A stretch of 64,000 nt of DNA from contig OZ116710.1 in NCBI GenBank assembly GCA_964199315.1, positions 9,052,001-9,116,000 of the forward strand. The letters are read 5' to 3'. Every line of letters starts with the position of its first letter. Within the stretch, counting starts at the first letter, position 1. A program made the position numbers and the translations under genes. The stretch is from Orbicella franksi (Eukaryota). Below the pieces are notes generated by a model. The model saw only the letters and a program-made list of their open reading frames with translations, had not been told where the DNA came from and did no database searches. Positions 3,625 through 63,270 of the stretch are shown here, piece by piece.

Positions 3625-5114
3625 ACACGTGTAGTAATATTCCATTTATACGATATTTAGCCAGAGGTTGTTATGGCCTGTACAGCTTTCAAGACGAAGA
3701 CAAAAGCCTCTATAAACCTGAATGGGTCCCTGTTCCTCCTAATATACCAATTGGAAACATATCATATGACATGTGCCCCAGGCCATGGCGTTACCATACA
3801 GCTACGGAGCTCAAAGGCGTTCCGCTGTGGGGTACGACAACTGTATACTCAGGGGGAGGATACGTGGCAGAACTTGGTTACTACTCCGCTAAGTCGCAAG
3901 AAGTGATCGATGAACTGGCCCATTACGAATGGATTGATCGACGCACGCGCGGTGTGTTTGTAGAGTTCACTGTTTACAACGCCCAAGTAAACTTGTTCAG
4001 TGTTATATCACTACTGGTGGAGGCCATGCCAACTGGCGGAGTGGAGACATTCCGTAGAATTGACACCATACGCGTTTACAGATACGTAGGAGAGCTCGCT
4101 AACGTCGCACTAGCCGCGGAGCTTATAATTGCTTTGGTCATATTGTTCTTACTTTACAAGGTTATCAAGTGTATGTACCATCAGAGGCTGGCATTCTTCA
4201 GGAAATTTTGGAATTTGGTAGATCTTTTGCAGGTCCTTTTCGCACTCGTGTCTATTGCTTTGTACTTTGTCAAGATGATAAGTATTAACGCAACTATGAA
4301 AGACTTGAGCGATAACCCCTTCCTTTTTGTCAGCTTTTCGATGCTGCTCACGTGGAACGAAATTGACACCTACATGATCGCGTTTGTGGTGTTCCTTACA
4401 ACGATCAAGTTCCTGTACTTGTTGAGATACAACAGCCACATCAAACTTTTAAATCAAACGTTTTCTAACATGCGACAGGAAATAATTCTCTTCATGGTTC
4501 AATTTCTGTTCTGGTTTCTCCCTTTTGTGATCATGTCTCACATATCATTCGGAGCTCATTTACAAGATTTCATTTCGCTTCCATCGGCATTTCAAGCCAT
4601 GCTCAATGCACTCCTCGGTGCTTCCTATTTTCATGATTTGGAACAGGTTGACCGTGTTATTGGCCCCGCTTTATTTTTCTGTTACAGCATTCTCATGGAA
4701 CTCATACTTCTCAACATGTTCGTTTCAATCATAAACGCAGCTTTTGGGAGTAGAGAAGTCCATCTTAAACCTTCGGAAACGGATCCAGAACTTATAGAGT
4801 TCATAATGAAACGGTTGAAAGCAATCTTGGGCGTGAATTTACTCTCTTCGAGCGTGGGCCCTGAGCAGAAATGGTTCGTGGATGATTCGAGTGACGATGA
4901 AAATGGCTACAGGATCATAAATGCAAAAAACCGTTATAATGTGTTGAACAGAAAGCTAGCTATCTTGCAGAGCAAATTCAGGGATGTCTCAATCTTAGAA
5001 GAGGAAGAAGAAGACGAAGATGTTTTGCTGGAGATGATGCTGAGGAAACACGAACAAGACAGTTTAGCGTCTTCACGAAGTGAGTGCTCAGGAACAACAG
5101 AAACTTCATTTTAA
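3625..5114 (+). CDS. PKD1L family protein, terminal exon with polycystin cation-channel domain (S1-S6) and acidic C-tail
   Basis: Acceptor ccttgcag|ac at 3624/3625 (phase 1) joins in frame to ORF 3771-5114. Motifs YSGGGYV, WIDRRTRGVFVEFTVYNAQVNLF and LLNMFVSIIN; stop TAA at 5112-5114. Exact paralog (PKD1L2-like is plausible) is not resolvable by eye. Confidence 0.93.
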
Positions 5115-7071: not shown

Positions 7072-7335
7072 TCATAATGATTTCCCAGTGTGATACCTTT
7101 CCAGCCACTCCTTCACTCCTTTCATGTCGTAACCCATAGGTCCTGGCCCACCTTCGTAAACAACCCTTCCGTTCTGGACGATGTGAAAGCGGATGGGAAG
7201 AGCACCGTAAGCGAAGTTTGCTGCGTCAAGCATTGTATCCACCACCACCGGACATCCGGGAATTTTTCGGGCCACCTCACACGCGGCGCGACATCTTTCG
7301 GCTTGTGTTCTGTGCGTTCTGATTTCGTAGTTGTC
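7072..7335 (-). CDS. DIO: Iodothyronine deiodinase-like protein A, exon 2 (C-terminal)
   Basis: Minus-strand acceptor tttttatag|GAC at 7336/7335. Translates DNYEIRTHRTQAERC...GCPVVVDTM..A..AYGALPIRF.IVQNGRVVYEGGPGPMGY..., closely matching the deiodinase C-terminus; stop TGA. Symbol is family-level only. Confidence 0.92.
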   Translation of the reverse strand, partial: DNYEIRTHRTQAERCRAACEVARKIPGCPVVVDTMLDAANFAYGALPIRFHIVQNGRVVYEGGPGPMGYDMKGVKEWLERYHTGKSL

Positions 7336-7703
7336 CTATAAAAAGACGTGCATGTAAAAGGTAACTTAATAAAAGCGTTAAAATGTTTTGTTGTCTCGAA
7401 TGTATGGTGGGAGAAGGATCACTTCAGAGGTCCAGAGTCGATACTGGTGCAGCCATTTCGGGCTTGCAAAGACCAATAGGAATAGACAGATCTTTTTGCT
7501 GTAATATAAGCTACTTGGTGTCTGAAAAGTTGTACTGGTGACAGCTAAAAGGTACTGAACGCTTATATTCTTGAAGAGGAAAGTTGTTCTATTGCTTCTT
7601 AGCCTCCTAAATGCGAAGTTGACATTGATTCGTACGGCAAAAATTAATTTCTGGGTTTTGTACATGTCCTAATTTCATAAAAATTCATAAAATATTGACT
7701 CAC

Positions 7704-8186
7704 TTTTAACGCCCATCCGTCTGATGGGTGTGCTTCTTCGATGTAAACAACGCAAAACTCAGCGACGTGGCTGAAGTGATTGGCCATTTTCAGAAATTCA
7801 TCTAACTGGCTCATGAATATTGGGCAGGTACAGCTGCCAAAGTTTAAAACAAGAGGCCGTCCAGATTGGGACATCTGTAATAAAGGAAAACAGTGTTTGC
7901 CAGTCAGTGACACCACTGGGCTGTTTGGCGCTTCGGAATCTTGCTTCATCTTCTTGTTCAGGTCTAAAGCCACGCTATGCCATACGTTCTGGAGCATTTG
8001 ATCAGTGAATAAAGAGTCCCAATACGAGGTCACCGGCAACTTTACTTTGGTAACGGCATCAAAAGCTCCGATGATAAATTTCCGAAAAGCAGGCACCGAT
8101 TTCAGCAAAGAGCCAATTGAAAAAAACAGCAGTAGCATGCTGTAAGCTGTGAACATTTGGACGGCTTGGACAGTCTGGACAAACAT
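7704..8186 (-). CDS. DIO: Iodothyronine deiodinase-like protein A, exon 1; Cys at the catalytic position
   Basis: ATG at 8186 and a hydrophobic N-terminal segment. Motifs RPLVLNFGSCTCPIF (TGC at 7826-7824) and VVYIEEAHPSDGW. Donor aaa|gtgagt at 7704/7703, phase 0. Joined CDS is 747 nt = 248 aa. Confidence 0.93.
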
Positions 8187-11100
8187 GTTGACTTCACTCT
8201 GTCCGGGTGCAGAATGAGTGTCTTAACAACCCTCCAGATGTTTTCTAATCATAAAAAATGATGTTAATATGTGGTTCGTGCCTGATCTTCCCACTGGATA
8301 CACAAAAACAATAGATTGCTCAATTCTCTTTAAATCCGCCTGAGTTACATTCTTGCTTGATTGATTATCGCATACAATCAATATATCGGTACAATAAAGC
8401 CTACCATTGAATTTTGCAGGAAATACCGATCCCAGACACACATATTTGGACGCCTTCAGCGCATTTCCAGATTTCAACAATTAACACCCTGTCTCTATCA
8501 CAAGACAGGCTTCCTCGTCTATTTTAAAACTTGAAAAACATGCTATCGTGGCTAAATCAGAATTAAGCAAATAGACTCTTTTGTCTTCTGCACGATAATA
8601 TTATCAAACGCGCGCCAAAATAACAGGCAATGTGTTTTAATGGTGTTCTTAAAACATTTCCAGCTATTTAGCCTTAGAATATGAAGGGTCCTCCACGTTA
8701 GGTGCTTGTTTGAAAGACTGGTTTCTGTCCATAATTTTTTGAGGTATAAAACTGTTCGTGTTGATGAAATAGATTGTGTGCACACTATGTAAGAGCTCAC
8801 ATCGTCCACAATACTCAAAGGATTTAAGAATGTAATGCGACTAAATGTTCTTTGGAAATTATTCCTTGGGGACAATTTTGGCTGGTTTTGAAAAAGCACG
8901 TCCAAAAACTCGCAAATAAGTAAAAAAAAAAAAAAAATGCCTGGACATGATCCAGGTGGTTGTTTTTCTGGGTAGAAAGCTGAGGTCAATTTTTGTTTGA
9001 ATTTTTTCAGTATTTGTTTTTCAAGTCTCATTGATATTCCTGTTACCATGGTGTTAAAACGATGTTTTTTCTTTACTAAACCGTGTCTTCTTGTGACACC
9101 TAGAGAGTTCGTGATACTATGTAAACACTGCAGACAGGCAGGAGGTAATGAGGGTTGCCGGAGTCATCCCATCACGTACATCTTTAAACGAGCGAAGGGG
9201 ATCTTAGACATGTCCTTAGCTGAATTCTAGTACCGTATAAATGTAATTGTACACGAATATTGCACCCGGCAATCTTACACAAACAAGCCTCCCAGTTACA
9301 GAATTATATTTGAAGGCAATTTTCAACTGGTACTAACTAGGAATGATTTATAAACAGAAACTGTATATTGTAAGCACGTAAATCCGTCCAATTTCTCTTC
9401 CGTTTCGACAAAAATGAGTCATGGAGGTGCAATCACAAAAATGTTGAATTAGCATTTTGTGATGATGCGATTTTCTATTTTGAGTTCTTCGGTTAGATCA
9501 CTACGTAATTGTTTACGAAGTCGAGTCTCGCAGGGAGCCCCAAACAGGTTTATTTGACGGGCACAGTATGACTCTGAGGCCGTGTTTGTGTGCCTTTTCC
9601 CGGAAATCTCGATATTTAAGCCTTAAAGCTTAGAAGCCAAACCATCGTGTGGTTCATAAGCGCCACATTTCGTGTCGTTGTCTTGAAAACATAGCCTGAT
9701 TTCGTGGCTCTGTAGGTGCTCATGACGTCAATGGAAGGGGCTTCGTGTACTAGGGAATCACTGAACAAAGAATCATCCTTGTATTTAAAAAACTACAAAA
9801 CAGAGAGGCACGCTACGCTGGAAAAAAAGCTCATGCAACGCAGTGGAAGTCATGGTTTTAATAACTTGGGGGTAAAGATCTGTAAAGATTTCAATGCCAG
9901 GTTGATTCAGTCTGCCATGTCAACAAGCTAGCGCGGATTAGCTGCTTTGTTCTCATGATGGTTCAAAACAAATTTTAGTGAGTAGTTTCTGAGAATAAGG
10001 CACTTGATCATGGTATTGTGATGAACCGAATTCTCCCAAGTCATATGATACAGAATGTTATAAGGTAAGAAGGGAGGATTTGGTTTCTGAAGAATGCAAT
10101 AGTTTGGTCCGTTTATGATAACCATTTACACGAGTGGTCGTGTTGACCAGATGAAGAAATTATTCATTTTGAACCTCTCGTAAATGAGTTGATCATATAG
10201 CCGGGTTACTCAAGTTCATTAACTCGATTTTCTTTGCATAAAACCTCCCAATAACCAATACGCAAATTATGACAACAATACTGAATAAGTCTCATTCAAA
10301 ATCACGGTACGCTGACGCATTTAACGGCCTTGAATTACAGTTGAACCCGCTGTCTATATCTCAAGGAAAACGAAAAATCGTTGGAAATAGTAAATGAATG
10401 AAAAAGAATATCCACGGGAAATTATTTGATTTCGAGATGGAGTGGGTTAGAGTAATCGACTTATCAGTTATAAAAAGAGATGGAGCTCGAGGTTTAACTG
10501 TATATTGGTGACTTAAGATGACAAGGCAGAAGAGAAGCGGGCAAAAGGCGCCGACCGACGCTAAAAAGAAGCAGATAATAAAGATTAAGTTTGCGTAGCA
10601 AGAGTTCCTGTACGAACGTAAAAGCTTTTTCCACATTCCGACCGCGCGCCCCATAACTCTCATGCACGTCGATGTTTTTGCTGTCGCCCCAATTTTTCTC
10701 GCCATCAGCAAGCTAGAAAGGTTTTGGTCGTATATGGAATAGGCCAATGAAGATTGAAAGGCGGCTAACCGGCTCAACAAGGTTGAAGTCCTGAATGCAG
10801 AAAATGGAACACTGAATCTAGGCTAAAGGGGCAAATTCCATCTTCAGTATTCTTTACATCTTACTTCTCGCAAATTGAATTACCCTCGCCCGTGATGGGC
10901 TCTTGCATTGGCCCAAATCAACTGAAAAAGTTTGTACAACACTTCTAATCGAAAACAGTTCCTATTGCTACACTTTAGTTGAATGAGCCAAGATGTTTTA
11001 TTTGAGAAGCGGCTGGTTCCGAAAAGAAAACGGCCTTACTGAGTACTTTTTGTGTTGAGTGCCCAAAACAAAGCAATTACATTGGCCAATCACGATTAAC

Positions 11101-11500
11101 GTAAACAGGACAATGGACAAATTAGAAGACGAAGCAAGAACATGTCACCAGAGCGAGACGCGGGTAAATGCGCGTGACCAAGTCGTTATTGTTTTTTTTT
11201 TTCCGCATTTGATTGGTTGAGCCGATGGTACCACAAGGGACACACAATCTAAAGAACCAATCAAAACTCATAGTAAGAGCATGTAGCTGAAGTGAAGCGA
11301 GGAGAAACGTGAGCGCGCGGCTTGCAATTGGGTTTGGTTTTACTTCAGACTGGATCAGAAAGTGGCGTTAGCTTTTATACCAATCACGTTGCGTAACATG
11401 TGAAACCAGATACTTTACCAGACCCAAGTAAAGAAAAAAACAGAGTAAAGCAAAAAAAAAAAAAGCAATTGGGGCTTACTTTCTATAGTATCTAATTACG

Positions 11501-12352
11501 TTTTTTTTTATTGAATAGGGGCTTGTTAGTGTAATGGCGGCAAATGGACGTTACGGCGGCGTCTATGAAGCGGGAACAGGCCCTTTTGTACGTAGGCATG
11601 GGACGCATGTTGGAGGAACAGTAAGCAAGCTGGTGCACACGAAGCGGATTGAGACATTAAAATGTGTTGTACATGTATTGGATACAGTTTGCATGAACGG
11701 TGCTCATGATTCGAAAACGGGACTATGACACAAGGAAAACTGTCGCTGCAACATGTCCCTGCTTCGTGTTCTCGCCACATGTCTCCTAGTGTGTGCCGAC
11801 CTTCAGACATGGCAAAAGATAACGTAATTTGTCGTTGGCCAAGTTTGCGTCTGTGCTTCTGAATTAGGATTTTTTTTTTATTGAATAGTGGCTTGTTAGT
11901 GTAATGGCGGCAAATGGACGTGTACTTTAAGGTCGGCACACACTAGGGGATACGTTACGGCGGCGTCTATGAAGCGGAACAAGCCCTTTTGTGTGTAGAC
12001 AAAGGACGCATGTTGCAGGAGCAGTACGCAAACTGGTGCATTATGCTGGCATTAAAATGTGTTGTAGCGGATACAGTTTGCAAGGGCAGTGCGCACTATG
12101 CGACATTGAAAATTGAGGTCATTTTGTCCCTGCTTCAGTGACCATCGAATTCAAACCAGCTGAATTTCATGCAACATGTCGCGGGTAACAGATTGTTCTC
12201 GAAAACGAGACTGTGACACGAGGAAAACTGTTGCTGCAGCATGTCCCTGCTTCGTGTTCTCGCCACATGTCCCTTAGTGTGTGCCGACCTGCATGGCACA
12301 AGATAATGTAATTTGTCGTTAGCCAAGTTTCCGTGTGTGCTTCTGAATAGGA
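11501..12352. repeat. Local tandem duplication (units 11501-11870 and 11871-12352) containing a MITE
   Basis: Both units start ttttttttattgaatag.ggcttgttagtgtaatggcggcaaatggacg and end ccaagttt.cgt.tgtgcttctgaat.aggat. Confidence 0.85.
11931..12289. mobile_element. MITE with ~20-bp terminal inverted repeats
   Basis: Left ggtcggcacacactagggga (preceded by TTAA), right tcccttagtgtgtgccgacc. Confidence 0.7.
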
Positions 12353-13530
12353 TTACGACACTTGTCTCGCTTTGGAAAAATAATCCCACAGCTCCTAATT
12401 ATTTAAAAAATGACTCTAAAATGCCTGCACGTTCTCGCCAGTAAGAGTACAAAGTCTCACCAGAGCGATCACGTCCTCTAGTCCTTTTTATTCATCTTGT
12501 ACCTATTAAATATTCATAGCTGTCTTAGTCGCAGGCTTTATATTGCTGTTGTTTCACGCTCGGCTGGGCTGTAATACTTTAAAGATTATTTGTGATTTTA
12601 TGGGATTATAATCATCACGAATTCAGTTGTTCAGATTATTTGTTTTATCTCTTAAATATGAATTAAACGTTTCGTCATACAAATGGTCCTCTAATCAAAC
12701 AAGGCATAACTGCAGGCCGTTGTAAGGCTTCACAGCCAAACCACAAAATTGTTGTTTCCTTATATTTTAGGAACTTGAAAGAAGACCAAAACTTCTGCGT
12801 GAACAGAAGTTAATCTGTTAATTTCATTAAATTCAGCAATTAGACTACTACCGAGCCATTTTATTACGAAATAGCAACCAGACGCAGCCGAATCGACTAA
12901 CACTCGTAAAATAGGACAGGAGGGATGGGGCACTCTTATAAGGATCTGTATGGGAAAGCTCCACACGAAAGGGTTCCTTTATCTTTTTCAGGCTTGGGCA
13001 TGGGGTGTATAAAAAAATGTAGGGTTTTAATAAGTTGAAGTAAAGAGAAGGGTACGATTAAAACCCATTATTTAGGTATATAAAAGGGATTTTCAAATTA
13101 AAATAGCTCGTTCTGAAAACTTTAGGAATAAAATTTAGGATTAAAATTTCGGAACATTTTGGTAAAATCATTAATTTGCTCGATTAATAGAATCGTTTCC
13201 AGGATAAAACTTTGTTGGAAACTCCCTCCCCCAGAGAAAAATGAGGGTACGTCGTCTAATTGATTAGGCAATATAGGATAGCGGCAAGAACAGTCAAAAC
13301 CTTACAATCCAAGGCCCCCAAGAACAGAGTAAATAATGAAACCAATTTTACACCGCGGACGTTTAAAATAGACAGCGAGTGCCTGAAACCAAAGAAGCAG
13401 ATCAGCTAAAGACTGGGCGCCAGCGCTCGAGTGACATTCAAAACGGAAGATAAAAAAAAAAAACCAAATCGGCCAGGAAGAGCGCCACGTTTTCCTCAAT
13501 AAGTTGCACGTCAAATAGAAACGCCATAAC

Positions 13531-13735
13531 CTGCACACGAGCAAAGTGGCCCATCATTAGGCCGGAGCTTATCACGATTTCTGCAGCACGAAGCGACGGG
13601 AGTATTTCCACTCCCCCCTGGATAGGATACTCGTCCACCGCAGGGTTACCCCCAGCATTAAATTTACCAGAAGCCATTTATACAGCTGGCTGGAGAGAGG
13701 CACTGTGAGAGTTAAGTGTCTTGGCCATGAGAAAC
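13531..13735 (-). mobile_element. 5'-truncated copy of the tRNA-derived SINE seen at 27512-27820
   Basis: The reverse complement aligns by eye with the central and 3' parts of 27590-27810 (ctctcacagtgcctctctcca...aatgctgggggtaacc...ataagctccgg). Confidence 0.8.
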
Positions 13736-16700
13736 GCATTAGAGTTATTTTTAATTTAATTTATTTAACTTATTTTTCTCCTTGAAACAAGAACAAACAA
13801 GTGTAAAAAACCACATCAGCAAAATGAATCGATCACTGACCACAGAGTAACAGTTAGAATATGCAGAGTTTTTCTCGTCATTGAAGATGAGGTATCCTAA
13901 GCCAAATGTATTTGGGAAAGTAAAACATGTAATAAATCTCTCTTATTATAGAATTCCTTTGCTAAAAACTATGTACGAGGACTTAAAACAAGACATCGTC
14001 TTACAAAATGAGTTGTTTGTTGATTGTGCAATGTTTACTGAGTATTGCTCGAGAGGCTTAAAGTCTCTATAGTCGTTACATGGTCTAGCAGTTCCGACTT
14101 CTGACCCGCTATCTCCAACACGTAAGACATTTCAGTTAAAAAATAACATACTTGCCTCATTGCAAGATTACTATTCACCTAAAAAAAGCTCTGATGATTT
14201 GGTATGTGTATACTTTAAGCGCCGTACCACTTATATATCCCCGGATTTTCTTTAGATCTAGAGATTCCGTGCTCCTTGATTAGACATACCGACATTGGTC
14301 TAAGTAACTCTTTGTTGGATTAAAAAACTTGTGGTTTGTCCGAGATTAGTACTAATGTTATATTATTATCAAACCGCTTTGCTCCAGATCCAATTGTAAA
14401 CTCTTGCACAACTATCCTCAGTTTGATATCTGAATATTTCACAAACTTAACCTATTTGCTCTCTCTTATTTACTGAAACGGATAAATGATTTGACACAAT
14501 ATTTAGGAAAGGCCGGATGAGTTGTTTTTTTTTGGCAAATCGTTTTACTCGAGCTCGTGACTCACGAGTCTTCTATAGCATATACATGATAGTTCCAGAC
14601 CACTGGGGGTCGAAAGTTGCCGACTATATGTATAAAGCTGCTGCGTTGTTTCTCTATGGATAGGCTCTCCCATATTATAAGTGAAAAAGAGCGCCATCCG
14701 GGACTCGCATACTCGAAACACTCAAAAATGCTCTAAAGTAGCCACGAAGTCCTCATCTCCCCTTTCAGACAGTTTCTCGAGAGGCATTACAACAGCTAAG
14801 TATTCCGGCTTGTAGGATTAAGGACAAACTGGGCTCCTGAGACGAGTAACTGACTGGGCCAGGATAATAGTGTCAAAAGACAAAACCTTTCAGAGACACG
14901 GTTTCAGAAACCTTTTTTTTGCCCAATAATTTCTTTCCGCCGCAGTTCCGAAGTGATACGTCTAAATTCTCTTTTTCCGTAAAGGAATAAAGTAATATTT
15001 TGCGGGTATCATACACGCCTGTTACCATAAATGCACTACTGATCATGTGTCGAACACTATCAACAAAAAGAAAATTGTAGTGTCAGCACGCAGGATGGCC
15101 ACCCACATTTCAATATCAGCAAGCTGCCAATGTTAGGGTTACTATGTGAAACTGTTCTCGACATCGCTAGAAATGAAGAGTACCAAGGTTGAAGAAAATT
15201 TTGTTTCCATGCTTATGGAAAATTTTTGCGCGGAATGACAGAACTGGACCCAATAAGTTGCACAGTCCCCTGAAAATGGACACCGCTTTGAAGTCGTTGA
15301 AGTTGTTGCTGGTCTAAAGAGTGTATTTTGATAGGAGAAGAGAGAAGCTGAAGGGAAAGAGAACTAATGAAATTGCAGAGTTTGTAAATGTTGTCCAGTT
15401 TTTTTCACACCAACAAACATTGCGTAGGCGTTCATTCCAGGTAATTGTATCAACACGTTAAACTTGACTAACCAGCTGGAATGTCCTTTCAAAAACATAT
15501 CGCCCAGATGCCGGTGTTTAGTAAAACCTTAATAGCCTTTTAGCGTAGGAAATAGCTTATTGATATATAAGCCAATACCACAAAAAGATTAAATATAATG
15601 CGTTATTAACAGCAGTAAAGACATTTGAAGAAGGAGCTGATTTCAATGGTTTACGATTGTGTTGCCCATCCGGAGCAAAACAGCAGTCAGCAAAAGGTTA
15701 TGCATCGACGGGTACCCAAGAAACCGTTTTGTTGTTCTTACATTCCAAGCCTGACAAACCTCTTTGTCTTCTGCGCATTTGGTGCAAATGGACCAAAAAG
15801 ACAAGTTAATATCTTTCACAGCAATCGCACTCTTTTATGAGGGTGGCACGTGATGAGGGCCAAAATAAGTGTGTGACTCGTGGACACGATGGATAGCAAC
15901 TAACAGACACGTGCTTGTTAGAAGTAGCTAAAAGCATATGCGATACGCGAACAAGGTTAAAATTCGTGCGAACGTGTCAAAAACGTAAAATGCCCCATTT
16001 GGTACCCTCTGCTATTACTTGATCAACTTGTACTAATACACAATACACATGTACACATGTTAAATGAACATCTTTTGCAGGCCAGATGAAGACCCCTGCC
16101 CAGTGTCAAACGTTAATTCAGTAATTGCTTACTGATTTAATAGGAAGTGCTTTGCTTTTGTGGTTAGATCTTGCAAAGATATTTCGGAAACGGTGGCTTT
16201 GATCACTGAATAAAGATCCCACAAGAATTACTTGACTGAGACATTAGACGTAAATGTATTTAGAGAAAGCAGTTCTGATACTCAGTGACAAAAAAACGTA
16301 AGATTTCGCTGAGTTAGTCTATGATTAGAGAACCCTAAAGACTATTTGTTTACGTAGCTACACGCTGCTGACGTATATACAAATTGGATGCGAAGACGTA
16401 TATACAAATGGTGAGAAGTCTATTCAGTAACAAAAAATACAGGCACTACTACCATATTCACATGTTTCAAACAATAAACGATAGGAGTCTGAAAAGAAGA
16501 ATATATAATATGTGATCTATATAATGGTTATTAATGCGAAGGAATGTGGATCAAACACTGAAGTTTCTTTTTTTTAATTACTTTTCCGTCAAAGATGAGA
16601 ACGTGAAAAGCACTTATGCTACCCATTCTTACTGGAAATTGTTAACTAAATTATCGTCTTTCGCTGTCAGAACTAAGTATATGTTGTGGACATGGTATGC

Positions 16701-17083
16701 TTCACTAAAGTTTCCAAAGGGCATTGACTCGAGTATGCCCGCCTTCTTAAAGTTTTTCAAGGTTTAATTAATTTATCACTAGAGCAAAATCCATTTTCAT
16801 CTTGTTACTCCTGATCCGGGATTTCAATCTAGGCTTATAACCAGAGCCGGAAACGCCTGACGGCTTGGCAAGGCCAGGGTTAGTTTCTCTAGTCTTTGAA
16901 CCATGCCGGAGTGTCCTCTTGATATATCTTTTTGATTTGATTGCCATATCAGTTTTTGCTTTGGACAGTCTGAACCCTTCTGTGGTATTTCTTCTCTTAC
17001 GCAAAGATTCCTCTCTTATCGGCAAAGGAGAAACTTAACACCAGTTTTCTCTGTCAGTCTCTCGCAACATTTTAAACACAACG

Positions 17084-17350
17084 TCATTGTTGTAGTAACT
17101 TTGCTCGGTCCAACCATGTCTTCACCTCTTGCATTCGGTATTTCATGGGCCCTGGGCCACCCTCGTAGGCAATTTCATTGTTTTGCACGATGTACAGTCG
17201 AATTGGCACAGCACCGTAGGCGATATTTGCCGCGTTTAACATGGAATCCACCGCCACAATACAACCAGAAAGGTCGACGGATGTTGTCATCTTCTGAGCG
17301 GCCTTACATCTCTCAAGTTGTGTACGGTGCATTGGAATGTCACTGATCCC
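17084..17350 (-). CDS. DIO: Iodothyronine deiodinase-like protein B, exon 2 (C-terminal)
   Basis: Acceptor tcttaatcag|GGG at 17351/17350. Translates GISDIPMHRTQLERC...GCIVAVDSM.NAANIAYGAVPIRLYIVQN..IAYEGGPGPMKY; stop TGA. Confidence 0.92.
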   Translation of the reverse strand, partial: GISDIPMHRTQLERCKAAQKMTTSVDLSGCIVAVDSMLNAANIAYGAVPIRLYIVQNNEIAYEGGPGPMKYRMQEVKTWLDRAKLLQQ

Positions 17351-17626
17351 CTGATTAAGATAAAAACAAGAGCAGTATAATCATTTGGCTCTTTTATTTT
17401 AATTTTCCTCTAATTGTCTGGAGTTTGTTTAGTCAGCTCTAACGGCACTGTGTCGAGTTTGTGGCACTTCTCCAAGTTTGGTCGATGGCCACCGCTTGAC
17501 AACAAAGTTGTTTATATCGATCTCATCTGTGCAGGCCAGCAAATTATTTAAAGTGCATTTACATGTTAAAAATAGACATGAGCACTATGAGCTGCACACG
17601 GTAAAAAGGAAAGCATTTTTTGTTAC

Positions 17627-18106
17627 CTTAAATGCCCAGCCATCGACTGGATGTGCCTCTTCGATGTAGACCACAGCAAAATCGGCCACCTCTGCAAAGT
17701 CGTTCTTTAATTGTTGGTACCTTTTCAACATTTGCATGAACACTGGGCAGGTTGAGCTCCCGAAATTAAGCACCAGAGGTCGGCTGCCCCTTGCAAAGTC
17801 CAGAAGCCGGTGGCAACGTTTTCCATCGACCGACACGACTGGCGAGTTGTAGGCCTTGCCGTGCAGTTTGACTTTCTTATTCTTGTCAGCGAGCACGCAA
17901 TGATAAACATTCTGAAGCATTTTCCAGGTAAACAGCGAATCCCAGTAAAGTTCCGTTGGCAAGGAAGTGTCTGTCATTTTGCACATAGCAATGCTGACGA
18001 ATGACTTGAAAAAAGGGACAATCTTTAAGAGCCATCCGACGGTGAACACAAAAACGAGTGTCGTATAGAGGAAAAACCTCTGCATGCCTTGAAATTCCAC
18101 AAACAT
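17627..18106 (-). CDS. DIO: Iodothyronine deiodinase-like protein B, exon 1; Cys at the catalytic position
   Basis: ATG at 18106. Motifs RPLVLNFGSSTCPVF (TGC at 17749-17747) and VVYIEEAHPVDGW. Donor aag|gtaaca at 17627/17626, phase 0, the same position as in paralog A. Joined CDS is 747 nt = 248 aa. Confidence 0.93.
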
Positions 18107-18182
18107 TTAGACTGCAATCAAAGAGCTCACCAATACTTGGTTTCGAATCGTTCCCGAATGAACAAATATTTTGTTTGTTGCT

Positions 18183-18191
18183 TTTTATATA
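18183..18191 (-). promoter_or_regulatory. Candidate TATA box of deiodinase-like gene B
   Basis: The minus strand reads ggcgggTATATAAAAAg about 77 bp upstream of the ATG at 18106. Confidence 0.45.
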
Positions 18192-21100
18192 CCCGCCTAC
18201 TCAGTCCACGTAAAAAAAATCCGCTTTCGGTGAGTGACTTAGAACAATACGACAGCAAATCTACTGCCCGGTGTATAATTACCACAATTAAAAATGACAC
18301 CATGTCATCCCACAGTGAAATGAGTAGTGGGAGCGGAAAACCCGAGAATATTCTCAGAAAAATGAAATCTTCGAGCAGAGAACTCTGCTTGTCTTGAATA
18401 TTTACTACTTTTTCTTTTTTTTTTTCTAATAATTCCTTACCTTTAAGTTTAAAATGCGAAACCATGCATGGTCCACGTCGTTAATTGTTCTATTTTGTGT
18501 TGACTGGTGCCAAAAACCAGTCACTCGTTTCATGACGCAGGAAATCGAAATTTGAGTCCACTAAACGCTTAACTGATGTTATGTGCTCTTAATTTTCGAT
18601 TTTGTGATCTTTATGGATAATTCACTGATGTTTTTTCGCTTTCGTGCTCAAGGTGTAAAGTCACTGCACAATTATCGTGATTATTAAGAGTCAATCAAGC
18701 CGCCATATACAAATGTATCCCTTGGGGCGCGCTCCTAATCTAATGCAATTAACAACAAATCAGTACTGTACGTTACGACTCATGCGCCGCTAACACCTGG
18801 CCGTGCAGTTCAAGCCACACAATAACAACAAACACACTGGCTTCAAAATGCTTTTACTGAAGTGTCCGGTCTTAAGAAAAAAGAAACTATTTCACATTTC
18901 GCTTCCGCTTCTACCGACATCAAAGATAACGCTCCATTAACATGAGCCTAATGAGTCGTTTGTCATAGCAAGAAATAAGAACACACTTTTACTCAGCCAT
19001 TGTGGTTCCGTTCTTTTGTCGTATGCCTATACGCCCCCTTCAAAGGTTTACCTGCTGGACCAATGATTGCATTTTGAGATTTTTCACTTAAAAAATATCG
19101 TATCATTGATGATTTCCAGTAACTATTCAAGGTTGCACTACTGAATCAAGTTTTCTGATGTAAGTGGCTTACTGACTCAGTGATATAATCTTTTTTCACA
19201 TCGGCACTATGCAAATGGTACTTGATATGTTTTCACAGTAATTGTATATATCTTATTACAAACCCGGGGTATTGCAATAAATATTTTTGAGAACTGAGCA
19301 GTTATATTGCAGCTCTATGGGGAGGCTGTACGTATATCAAATCATAATGCAAATGAGCAGCCGTTATTTCAGCTGTGCTGCATGCTTCACTCTAACAATA
19401 ATTTTGTAACCTCAAATATTTACTTTTCCGAAATCCTGGTTGTGAACCCTTCTCGTCGGTCTCACGCGGAGGTCGGAATGCGGGGATTAACAATAACCTG
19501 TTATACCGGTCTGCTAGAGTGCAAGTAGCGTGAGAAAGCACTTGTGCTTGTCTCTCGCGGTAGCTCTATTGCACTGAATGCAGTTGAGTAAATAATCGTG
19601 GGGTATTATTGTATACGCGATAAAAGATATCGGCACGGTCAAAAGATCAAGTAAAGCTTAAACACCTTAAACGTTTTTTCTTCACCTGTCCTTTCATCGA
19701 ATTTTGAGTAGTAAAATATTTTACTTACGGGAATCATCCACTAAACCGTGCTGATAGAGAGACTCTCTTGGTGCTTGACAATATACAGACGACCCACGCT
19801 CAAGTCACGAGCAGTAATATGACAACGGGTTGACCGCTAAGAACTACAAGAATGTATATCGGACTCGCTGTAACTGAGAAAGTCGAGCATATTTTGGTCA
19901 ATTACTTAAGGACCGATTGTCCAACATAGGGTCATGTTAAACGTTAACTTCGGGTTAAGTCATTTATGAAACACCAACAATTATTTCCCTCAGAAAAGAC
20001 CAGAAAAGAAAAACTCATCTCTCTTAATTTCCGTACCGTCGGCTCAGCAGTTTTCACTTTGGACTATCTCCAATCGTCCCTTAAATTAGCGGAAATTGAA
20101 CGGGCGCTTCTGAAACGGACTGAAATTAAAACCTAGTGACTCTTAACCCCAGATTAGCGCAAATCGGTTTTACGAACGACCGAAGCGACAAGATTAAAAT
20201 AAACTTAATTTTGCCATGTTTGTATCCTGTTGCGAGTCTGGGACCTTGTAGTGGTGGTTTTAAACGGTTTTCGTGATCCCACTGCTAAGGACTTTAATCT
20301 AAAATACGACAATTTTTCTGGCTATGACAAATACAAAGTAACACTCTCGACAAAAGCTTGGGCAGCCTGTGGCTACGGTTCATGCGTGAGAAAAATGATG
20401 ACGTCAAACATCCAGTAGTTTCAGTTATTTACATATATAGACATTTCTTGGTCTGGATAATCGTGACCTTGCCGCGCATAATAGCCATAAATAGCATGCT
20501 TGACGTCATAATTCTCACAGCTTCTAACAAGGTTTTCATCGTCAACACTAAGTTCAGGGATAAGTTTTATTAGTCAGTTCCATTACCCTTGGTTATCTTG
20601 TAAAGATAAATGATATACGATTACAACATATATTTAAGAATTGAAACCTTACTTCAATAACAAAGGGAAAAAAGGTTTTAGTTAAGAGTTAATAGGGTAA
20701 AACTATTAAAAGAAGAAGAATAACTCAATCAAAGTGTCGTGATTTTAATTTCGTGACCGTGTGTCACGCCAATATCCAGAAACAAGCTTGATGGAAAGTG
20801 ATGACGTAATTCCCTTGTTTGTTTGAGTTCGGCCGCAAAGAAATGTTCTCTTGATTATTGGAGTTTTCCCTGTGTGTTGCTTATTATTGGTGAATATTCA
20901 TGAATTTCTTAACGTTTTAAACCTGTTGCGTGAATAAAGTACAGGCGTATCACGTGATCTGGACTTCGTGACATGCATTGCGTGATGTTTAAAACTTCTG
21001 GTGAGTTCTTGAATATTAACGAGAGTTCATTAATCTGCTCGGCTATCCAGTAGTTGGAAGGTTTTTCCTAATAGAAAAACCAAATAGGAATTATGACGTC

Positions 21101-22198: not shown

Positions 22199-22376
22199 TA
22201 GCCTGCGTAGCAAGCGTTCCCTTAGGAAGAGCTTTTCCGCATTCTGACCGCGCGTAAATTTAGATGAGACCAAAAACTCAGCTCGCCCCACCACTCCCTG
22301 CTTCGTCTAATTTTTGCTCTCGCTCCAATTTACGCGCGGTCAGAATGCAGAAAGGGAACTCTTGCTACACAGGCGT
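22199..22376. mobile_element. Palindromic MITE with possible 9-bp target-site duplication
   Basis: Termini tagcctgcgtagcaag / cttgctacacaggc; internal IR cattctgaccgcgcgtaaatt / aatttacgcgcggtcagaatg; flanks cccattcat and cccaatcat. Confidence 0.7.
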
Positions 22377-62106: not shown

Positions 62107-63270
62107 ATGAAAATGAGCAACAGCACGAACCAAACCCAGGATCGATGTCAGCAAGAAATTCAACGCGACTTCATTTTGCAAACAGCGTTTCTGATCCTGA
62201 TCATGGTGGTAACATTCCTGGGAAACTTCATGGTGTGCTTGGTCGTGTACCTCCATCGAAGACTGCGCACCGTCACCAACTACTTCATTGTGTCATTGGC
62301 CGTGTCCGACCTATTGATTTCCGTGTTGTTGGTGCCCTTCCGAATCCACCAAACATTACACAATGGTGTCTATTGCCTTAACACTGCGCTCTGTTGGACT
62401 TGGCTCCTTACAGATCTGACCTGTGCATGTGCATCAATTTGTAACCTGGCAGCCATCTCTGTAGACCGGTACATCGCCATTGTCCACCCGTTCAGGTATC
62501 ATTCCCTCATGACTACAAGAGTTGGGTGGGTGATGATTGCAATGGTGTGGACCTACTCAGTAGCCTGGGCGAGCCTCTCCTCGTTCAACTGGACAAACCT
62601 CGGTGAAGAGCACATCTTCACCGATCATGTATGTCATAAAAAGGACAAAATATTCTACACCGTAGCCACGACCATGGACTTTTACGTGCCACTCCTGATT
62701 GTTTTGATCATGTACGGACTCGTTTTCCGTGTGGCGATGAATCAAGCCAGAGCTGTAGCCTCCTTACAGCCCACCTCTAACCGAGACAGACGCGGTCGAA
62801 GATTTTCCATAAACATCGTTAAAGAAGTGAAGGCTGCGAAGACTTTAGCCATTGTCATTGGAGCATTTGTCATCTGCTGGTTCCCGTTTTTCACACTTTT
62901 GCTGATCAGTTTGTGGAAACTTGAATTGTTAAAACAACTTTCTGAACAGACCCTCCTGGGGTTGCGTGGCACGTTCAATTACGTCCTGCCAACAATCAAC
63001 AGCACTTTGAACCCAATTATATACGCCTTGTTTAACAGGGACTTCAGGTCAGCATTCTGCCGATTACTCCAGAGGACATTTGGTAGCTCATGCTCCAGAT
63101 CTAACAACAATTCAAACGTTGACGAGTCTCAGTATTCTATGAACATTGCTGTAACTAACGCAAGCCCTAAGGGTAAGCTAACGAAGAACGGAACTGCGAA
63201 GAAGACTAAATTTCACGAGGTGTATGGCGAGGAGGAAGCAGGAGCAGCGGAGGAACCAAAGCCTGTATAA
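62107..63270 (+). CDS. Class A (rhodopsin-like) GPCR, biogenic-amine-receptor-like, intronless CDS
   Basis: 387-aa ORF with 7 hydrophobic segments and motifs GN (TM1), SLAVSD (TM2), Asp3.32, SVDRY, P5.50, KAAKTL, CWFPFF and NPIIY, plus N-terminal N-glycosylation sequons. Confidence 0.95.
   Translation: MKMSNSTNQTQDRCQQEIQRDFILQTAFLILIMVVTFLGNFMVCLVVYLHRRLRTVTNYFIVSLAVSDLLISVLLVPFRIHQTLHNGVYCLNTALCWTWLLTDLTCACASICNLAAISVDRYIAIVHPFRYHSLMTTRVGWVMIAMVWTYSVAWASLSSFNWTNLGEEHIFTDHVCHKKDKIFYTVATTMDFYVPLLIVLIMYGLVFRVAMNQARAVASLQPTSNRDRRGRRFSINIVKEVKAAKTLAIVIGAFVICWFPFFTLLLISLWKLELLKQLSEQTLLGLRGTFNYVLPTINSTLNPIIYALFNRDFRSAFCRLLQRTFGSSCSRSNNNSNVDESQYSMNIAVTNASPKGKLTKNGTAKKTKFHEVYGEEEAGAAEEPKPV

Follow-up and report, generated by a model that had tools for sequence, protein, structure and literature searches.

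Tandem cysteine-type deiodinase-family genes in the coral Orbicella franksi, with selenocysteine paralogs in the same genome

The role of deiodinases in animals that have no thyroid hormone receptor, and what selenocysteine (Sec) gains over cysteine in these enzymes, are two questions raised by a locus of the coral Orbicella franksi. The stretch of DNA analyzed, referred to below as the window, encompasses 64,000 nucleotides (contig 13, OZ116710.1, positions 9052001-9116000, assembly GCA_964199315.1) and includes a tandem pair of genes, named gene 1 and gene 2, whose products are related to the iodothyronine deiodinases and have Cys at the catalytic position. An earlier note, made from the sequence of the window, had described the pair and proposed that it may form a selenium-independent dehalogenation system. 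We consider it probable, with considerable room for doubt, that these are two functional, anciently duplicated Cys-type genes of the deiodinase family encoding thiol-dependent dehalogenases, the substrate of which is probably not thyroxine (T4) or triiodothyronine (T3) bound in the vertebrate way. Coordinates are positions in the window unless a contig is named.

Gene models and family membership

Translation of the minus strand confirmed the two co-oriented genes, each with two exons and a 248-amino acid product, that the earlier note had described. Exon 1 of gene 1 (8186..7704, minus strand, codons 1-161) was defined by translation, by a match to the Pfam family PF00837 (E = 1.1e-39, profile positions 14-154) and by hydropathy. 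It includes a hydrophobic N-terminal anchor (residues 16-34), the motif NFGSCTCP with the catalytic Cys121, and YIEEAHPSDGWALK, and it aligns to mouse Dio3 (structure 4TR3) with an E value of 5e-21. The catalytic codon is TGC (7826-7824, minus strand), and Cys121 is the equivalent of Sec170 of mouse Dio3. A 368-nt phase-0 intron (7703..7336, minus strand, GTGAGT...TATAG) follows GWALK at a position also found in the Desmophyllum and Pocillopora orthologs. Exon 2 (7335..7072, minus strand, codons 162-248 and stop; PF00837 E = 1.4e-26, profile positions 157-237) includes His169, the distal Cys189, and Ile209, Pro225 and Met228, which occupy the positions of Dio3 Glu259, Arg275 and Asp278, respectively.

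Gene 2 has the same organization. Its exon 1 (18106..17627, minus strand, codons 1-160) includes the hydrophobic N-terminal anchor (residues 12-30) and the motif NFGSSTCP with the catalytic Cys120, encoded by TGC (17749-17747, minus strand). The 276-nt phase-0 intron (17626..17351, minus strand, GTAACA...ATCAG) follows GWAFK, and exon 2 (17350..17084, minus strand, codons 161-248 and stop) includes His168, the distal Cys190, Ile210, Pro226 and Met229. This gene is covered by a spliced transcript, the 1442-nt Logan contig L023 from run SRR6255863, which is 98.5% identical to the locus in two blocks: nucleotides 1-758 correspond to 18382-17626 and nucleotides 756-1423 to 17352-16685, so that the intron is absent from the transcript as modeled, and the catalytic codon of the transcript is also TGC. 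The extent of L023 defines a 5' untranslated region (UTR) of at least 18382..18107 (minus strand), with an in-frame stop immediately upstream of the ATG, and a 3' UTR of at least 17083..16685 (minus strand) without a selenocysteine insertion sequence (SECIS)-like element. The earlier note had asked that the splice models be confirmed by RNA; this was achieved for gene 2 with its own transcript, while for gene 1 the junction is seen in ortholog transcripts only. The latter are two spliced transcripts from an Acropora-like coral (L025 and L026) that have the same junction and TGT as the catalytic codon.

All four exons match PF00837 (T4_deiodinase) with E values from 1e-39 to 2e-23 and scores of 83-137 bits, the cut-off being 27, and together they cover profile positions 14-237 in gene 1 and 30-236 in gene 2, which places both products in the family. 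The profile positions are continuous across each intron (154 to 157 or 159), and this lends support to the modeled splicing. The highest Kyte-Doolittle value over 19 residues is 1.62 for gene 1 (residues 16-34) and 1.91 for gene 2 (residues 12-30), and a single N-terminal transmembrane anchor is predicted in both proteins. The other elements of the earlier description also held when examined: the common phase-0 intron after GWA(L/F)K has GT..AG borders in both genes, the TGC codons are present in the window DNA, both open reading frames (ORFs) are intact, and the two proteins, thought to be about half identical, agree at 134 of the 244 aligned positions (55%). The supposed cnidarian origin was likewise correct, the closest named proteins being those of Desmophyllum, Oculina and Acropora; for exon 1 of gene 1 the closest database proteins are from Desmophyllum pertusum (84%), Oculina patagonica (85%) and Acropora millepora (75%). 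A protein of Orbicella faveolata shares 99% identity with a paralog located elsewhere in the assembly.

Cysteine at the catalytic position

Gene 1 and gene 2 are genuine Cys-type genes, neither misread selenoprotein genes nor pseudogenes. At the catalytic position both have TGC and not the in-frame TGA of a selenoenzyme. A catalytic TGC or TGT was read in the window DNA, in Desmophyllum DNA and in two transcripts, and the Cys codon is kept in at least five coral genera. A scan combining sequence pattern and base pairing found nothing convincing as a SECIS, with weak scores only, in the 3' UTRs of gene 2 and of the gene 1 ortholog; the Sec paralogs described below were used as positive controls, and in two of them a textbook SECIS was recovered. 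The assignment of the pair as non-selenoprotein genes made by the earlier note therefore stands. A search of window positions 1-24000 with the Rfam SECIS model at E values up to 1 also gave no match, but this model was blank as well on six paralog loci, one of which has a textbook SECIS, and it is so insensitive that its blanks carry no weight.

Selenocysteine paralogs in the same genome

A PF00837 profile search of the whole assembly (497 Mb, 805 contigs) yielded 16 exon matches that correspond to eight genes, five with Cys and three with an in-frame TGA. All eight consist of two exons separated by the same phase-0 intron after GW(A/R)(F/L/W)(K/N). Contig 13 harbors gene 1, gene 2 and a third gene of the Sec type, located at 8999894..8993427 of the contig on the strand of gene 1 and gene 2 (minus), about 60 kb from gene 1 and outside the window, with the motif NFGSSS-TGA-RPF. 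Three Cys genes are found on contig 9 (7379101-7380175, plus strand; 7387083-7386044, minus; 7391653-7390338, minus), and two Sec genes on the plus strand of contig 41 (153589-158729 and 162815-164213), with the motifs NFGSCS-TGA-PPF and NFGSYS-TGA-PPF.

The contig 13 Sec gene is represented by a 3015-nt transcript (L027, JGI sample 3300008042) from which a 5.7-kb intron has been spliced out. The 3' UTR of this transcript includes a textbook SECIS 1.05 kb past the stop codon; this element has the ATGA/GA quartet, a pair of helices and AAA as the apical motif. An equally good SECIS lies 190 nt past the stop of the second contig 41 gene (contig 41, 164389-164439), and the transcript of its ortholog from another coral has a SECIS as well. 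For the first contig 41 gene no SECIS was found within 4.3 kb of the stop, and its assignment to the Sec type comes from the conserved in-frame TGA alone. The orthologs of other corals keep the TGA, which gene callers there take for tryptophan. Three genes for tRNA-Sec(TCA), each scoring about 80 bits, are located on contig 1 (6579642-6579727 and 8761667-8761752) and contig 12 (2091930-2092015). The spliced transcript, the SECIS elements, the conserved TGA and the tRNA-Sec genes taken together indicate that the TGA triplets on contigs 13 and 41 are real Sec codons. Weaker tRNA-Sec matches cluster on contigs 2 and 12. The annotation of the Porites evermanni ortholog of the contig 13 Sec gene (P0120) omits the Sec region, a typical misannotation of a selenoprotein.

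This coral thus runs Sec and Cys forms of deiodinases in parallel. The notion of a selenium-independent system has to be corrected, since the genome has, besides the tRNA-Sec genes, three deiodinase genes of the Sec type, and one of these lies in the cluster of the pair. A single coral genome in which both forms occur together, all of them under purifying selection, can be considered a natural experiment.

Age of the duplication and selection

Cys orthologs of both genes are found in Desmophyllum, Pocillopora, Oculina and Acropora, and the tandem order is usually kept. Desmophyllum and Pocillopora meandrina likewise have gene 2 followed by gene 1 on one strand, at a distance of 8-9 kb, and in Oculina adjacent locus tags suggest this order. 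The recurrence of this order across genera of stony corals indicates that the duplication is older than their radiation, in agreement with the old duplication assumed in the earlier note. In D. pertusum MU827309.1 (L024:300-345) exon 1 of the gene 2 ortholog is one base short within an A-rich run, which shifts the reading frame, and the annotated product has only 127 amino acids; either the indel belongs to the assembly or the loss in this species is real.

The ratios of nonsynonymous to synonymous substitution rates (dN/dS) obtained by the Nei-Gojobori method (NG86), in comparisons at dS values of 0.64-1.49, were 0.133 for gene 1 and 0.117 for gene 2 against Desmophyllum, and 0.117 for gene 1 against L025. 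Values of 0.11-0.13, and not near 1 as would be expected had the earlier note been mistaken about these genes, are those of genes under strong purifying selection.

Phylogeny and switching between selenocysteine and cysteine

A maximum-likelihood tree of 63 sequences (LG+C20) placed in one clade, with support of 97/97, the orthologs of gene 1 and of gene 2, the two proteins of Nematostella, and the contig 13 Sec gene together with its own orthologs. On this tree gene 1 and gene 2 are members of an anthozoan Cys-type lineage shared with sea anemones. The Cys genes of contig 9 make up another clade (98/89), and the contig 41 Sec genes were placed, with weak support, together with vertebrate and other Sec-type sequences. 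None of the vertebrate types DIO1-3 is individually orthologous to any of the coral genes. The contig 13 Sec gene shares 47-49% identity with gene 1 and gene 2.

The best tree needs at least two changes between Sec and Cys. Monophyly of all the Cys forms was not rejected by the approximately unbiased (AU) test (p = 0.16), and consequently the nesting of Sec within Cys is that of the best tree but is unproven; a single ancient change from Sec to Cys is still compatible with the data. Among 59 sequences Sec is always accompanied by Glu or Asp at Dio3 position 259 and Cys always by Ile, Thr, Val or Leu. A phylogenetically independent test of this coupling had two informative pairs only and was not significant (p = 0.5). 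A "C" at the catalytic site in database entries derived from UniRef or NCBI may stand for U, as the rabbit and platypus entries, which show C, illustrate. For this reason Cys was scored only with support from DNA or raw gene calls, Sec was assigned to vertebrates on the basis of established knowledge, and a crayfish entry was left unscored.

The occurrence of a Sec/Glu gene nested among Cys/Ile genes in one cluster would mean that the coupled switch took place more than once, possibly including a rare reversal from Cys to Sec. This is part of a broader proposal to which we give only slight credence: the anthozoan Cys deiodinases would be an ancient distinct subclass in which the switch between Sec and Cys was coupled to remodeling of the pocket, namely the change of Glu259 to Ile and the loss of Arg176, Arg275 and Asp278, and they may act as thiol-dependent dehalogenases of non-amino-acid halogenated phenolics.

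Predicted structure and substrate pocket

The product of a transcript that is 99% identical to gene 2 (P0046) was modeled with AlphaFold (predicted local distance difference test, pLDDT, 94.6); the model is helical at residues 2-20. Its top PDB matches were mouse Dio3 4TR3 (template modeling (TM) score 0.82, root mean square deviation (rmsd) 2.0 Å, 44% identity, E = 5e-19) and mouse Dio2 9H48 (TM score 0.83, E = 8e-19), with rmsd values over Dio3 and Dio2 of 2.0-2.6 Å. The next matches were generic thioredoxin and peroxiredoxin folds with E values of 2.5e-6 and 11-17% identity, a gap of 13 orders of magnitude. The predicted structure is that of a thioredoxin fold with the deiodinase-specific insertion, and the solved structures nearest to it are those of Dio enzymes.

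Alignment to 4TR3 showed that Dio3 Ser167, Thr169, Tyr197, Glu200, His202, His219 and Cys239 are all present in gene 1 and gene 2 (the roles of the Dio3 catalytic and pocket residues have been described in PMC11592359 and PMC7506546). Gene 1 keeps the proximal Cys (SCTC), as do DIO1 and DIO3, and gene 2 is without it (SSTC, compare SATU in DIO2). Four polar residues of the Dio3 pocket, on the other hand, are replaced in gene 1, gene 2 and their orthologs by uncharged and mostly hydrophobic residues: Arg176 by Gln in gene 1 and Met in gene 2, and Glu259, Arg275 and Asp278 by Ile, Pro and Met, respectively, in both. Arg275 has been proposed as the carboxylate clamp for the hormone, and the Arg275Ala mutant has low activity, while Arg176, Asp278 and Glu259 make up the pocket's wall and floor (PMC11592359, PMC7506546). 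A basic residue near the Arg275 position, which is Arg in Dio3, Lys in Dio2 and Arg one residue earlier in Dio1, is absent from gene 1 and gene 2, where the sequence is G-G-P-G-P-M. Since the residues proposed to hold the amino-acid end of the hormone in Dio3 are not conserved, the idea of a substrate other than T4 or T3 gains some indirect support, and a non-classical substrate is plausible for both proteins.

Comparison with known systems

Like vertebrate DIO1-3 (the structures compared were mouse Dio3 4TR3/4TR4 and mouse Dio2 9H48), the two coral proteins match PF00837 over its full length, have an N-terminal anchor followed by a catalytic domain of the thioredoxin fold, and share the Ser-x-Thr-(Sec/Cys)-Pro motif, with 44-48% identity in the core. 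They differ from the vertebrate enzymes by the presence of Cys instead of Sec, the lack of a detected SECIS and the four changed pocket residues. Peroxiredoxins and membrane-anchored thioredoxin-like oxidoreductases, for example ResA, TlpA and Prx1, also share with them the type of fold and a nucleophilic Cys where helix alpha-1 begins; these proteins, however, are only 11-17% identical, score far lower in structural comparison and have neither the deiodinase insertion nor the EAHPxDGW and His219 relay.

The amphioxus deiodinase is an invertebrate homolog with a catalytic Cys that is compared here by its description in a review (PMC10083991). According to that review the amphioxus enzyme is active on TRIAC and not on T3 or T4 (Klootwijk, Friesema and Visser 2011), which indicates that a family member with Cys can be functional. 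Amphioxus belongs to a different phylum, and the Sec or Cys state may have an independent origin there. The Nematostella vectensis genes belong to the same clade as the coral pair and have the catalytic Cys and Ile or Thr at the Glu259 position. Only Cys-form deiodinase genes have been reported from Nematostella (Jiang, Ni and Liu 2012, PMC3473315), whereas this coral retains three Sec forms too. Invertebrate deiodinase genes are often tandemly clustered (PMC3473315), and the family has been surveyed in Nematostella and Edwardsiella (PMC3909931). NCBI already annotates coral orthologs of gene 1 and gene 2 as "thyroxine 5-deiodinase", "type I-like" and "type II-like", type names that are automatic labels.

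The novelty claimed in the earlier note was hence overstated, cnidarian Cys forms and invertebrate tandem clusters having been published in 2012. What is added is modest and comprises the tandem arrangement of gene 2 and gene 1 in stony corals, the coexistence of Sec and Cys paralogs, possibly in one cluster lineage, the retention by corals of Sec forms reportedly missing from Nematostella, and a consistently remodeled pocket in the Cys forms. Neither a biochemical characterization of any cnidarian deiodinase nor a paper on a coral selenoproteome was found in the searchable literature.

Proposed mechanism and alternative functions

By homology, the Cys thiolate (Cys121 in gene 1, Cys120 in gene 2) would be activated by the conserved Ser-Thr-Tyr-Glu-His-His relay and would attack the halogen on an aromatic substrate, leading to its reductive removal. 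The resulting sulfenyl halide could be resolved by a second Cys, either the proximal Cys119 in gene 1 or the distal Cys189 or Cys190 in either protein, and a cellular thiol reductant would regenerate the enzyme. The substrate would be held differently from T4 and T3: with Arg176, Glu259, Arg275 and Asp278 replaced, the preferred one is probably not either of these hormones bound as in vertebrates. The halotyrosines or halophenols suggested by the earlier note are speculative candidates.

Several points weigh against functional dehalogenases. No gene 1 junction was found in the contigs from three RNA libraries of O. franksi itself, and in these contig sets the gene 1 exons, its intron and the intergenic DNA are covered at a similar low depth; one run of raw reads had 0 reads on the stretch with gene 1. 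Enzymatic activity of a cnidarian member of the family was not found in the searchable literature, and the loss of the polar pocket could equal a loss of dehalogenase function instead of a change of substrate. The mechanism is moreover transferred from mammalian enzymes, in which mutants with Sec changed to Cys are much less efficient.

An unlikely alternative is that gene 1 and gene 2 encode genuine iodothyronine deiodinases and take part in a thyroid hormone-like signaling that times coral reproduction or metamorphosis. The catalytic core is indeed conserved, and transcripts named "dio" vary with lunar phase and temperature in A. millepora (PMC6851572), increase in A. tenuis during the week that precedes spawning (PMC12573721), and were picked up at coral settlement and metamorphosis (PMC3204972). 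These papers, however, do not name the paralog, and with eight deiodinase genes in this genome the published coral "dio" expression results are uninterpretable until it is named. The thyroid hormone receptor is absent from cnidarians (review PMC10083991), the putative clamp Arg275 is Pro in the pair and its partners Glu259 and Asp278 are Ile and Met, and the Sec paralogs, in which Glu259 is kept, are at least equally good candidates for such a role.

It appears quite unlikely that both proteins are thiol peroxidases or thiol-disulfide oxidoreductases built on a deiodinase scaffold that has lost dehalogenation. Such a function would be in keeping with the peroxiredoxin-like nature of the deiodinase fold (many Prx and Trx structures match the P0046 model at E values of about 1e-5), with Cys as the active residue and the C-x-C motif of gene 1, and with the loss of the polar substrate pocket, and one coral study placed a deiodinase clone under "oxidative stress" (PMC3204972). 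Against it, the EAHPxDGW edges of loop D, His202 and His219 are strictly conserved under purifying selection, and Dio2 and Dio3 match the model 13 orders of magnitude better than any Prx; the Prx matches at about 1e-5 share only 11-15% identity. Pfam showed no Prx or AhpC-TSA match on the exons of gene 1 and gene 2, only a sub-threshold match to Thioredoxin_8 on exon 1 of gene 2 (18 bits against 27), and the amphioxus Cys homolog, as described in the review, is an active deiodinase (Klootwijk 2011, via PMC10083991).

That gene 1 and gene 2 are decaying or mismodeled, either as pseudogenes or as selenoprotein genes whose real TGA exon lies elsewhere, is extremely improbable: the missing own-species junction read for gene 1 and the one-base frameshift of the Desmophyllum gene 2 ortholog speak for it, but both readings are largely refuted by the intact frames, dN/dS values of about 0.12, the Cys codon conserved among coral genera, spliced transcripts carrying TGC or TGT, and 3' UTRs in which the scan that detects the SECIS of two Sec paralogs found none.

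Neighboring sequences

Downstream of gene 1 and convergent with it, a polycystin-type gene (PLAT; Polycystin_dom and PKD_channel) has long open exons at 908-2320 and 3771-5114 of the plus strand. A gene of this type also adjoins the D. pertusum ortholog of gene 1 (L024), which indicates that the microsynteny is conserved. An intronless ORF of 387 amino acids at 62107-63270 (plus strand), 44 kb from gene 2, codes for a rhodopsin-family G protein-coupled receptor (7tm_1, E = 3e-58). In A. tenuis a "DIO3" gene adjoins a DRD5-like receptor gene, and both increase ahead of spawning (PMC12573721). A 43-nt inverted repeat, 84% complementary and with a 34-nt loop, occupies positions 22234-22353 and has sub-threshold matches to models of plant microRNA precursors on each of the two strands; a hairpin or the remnant of a transposon is its most likely identity, and not a known RNA family.

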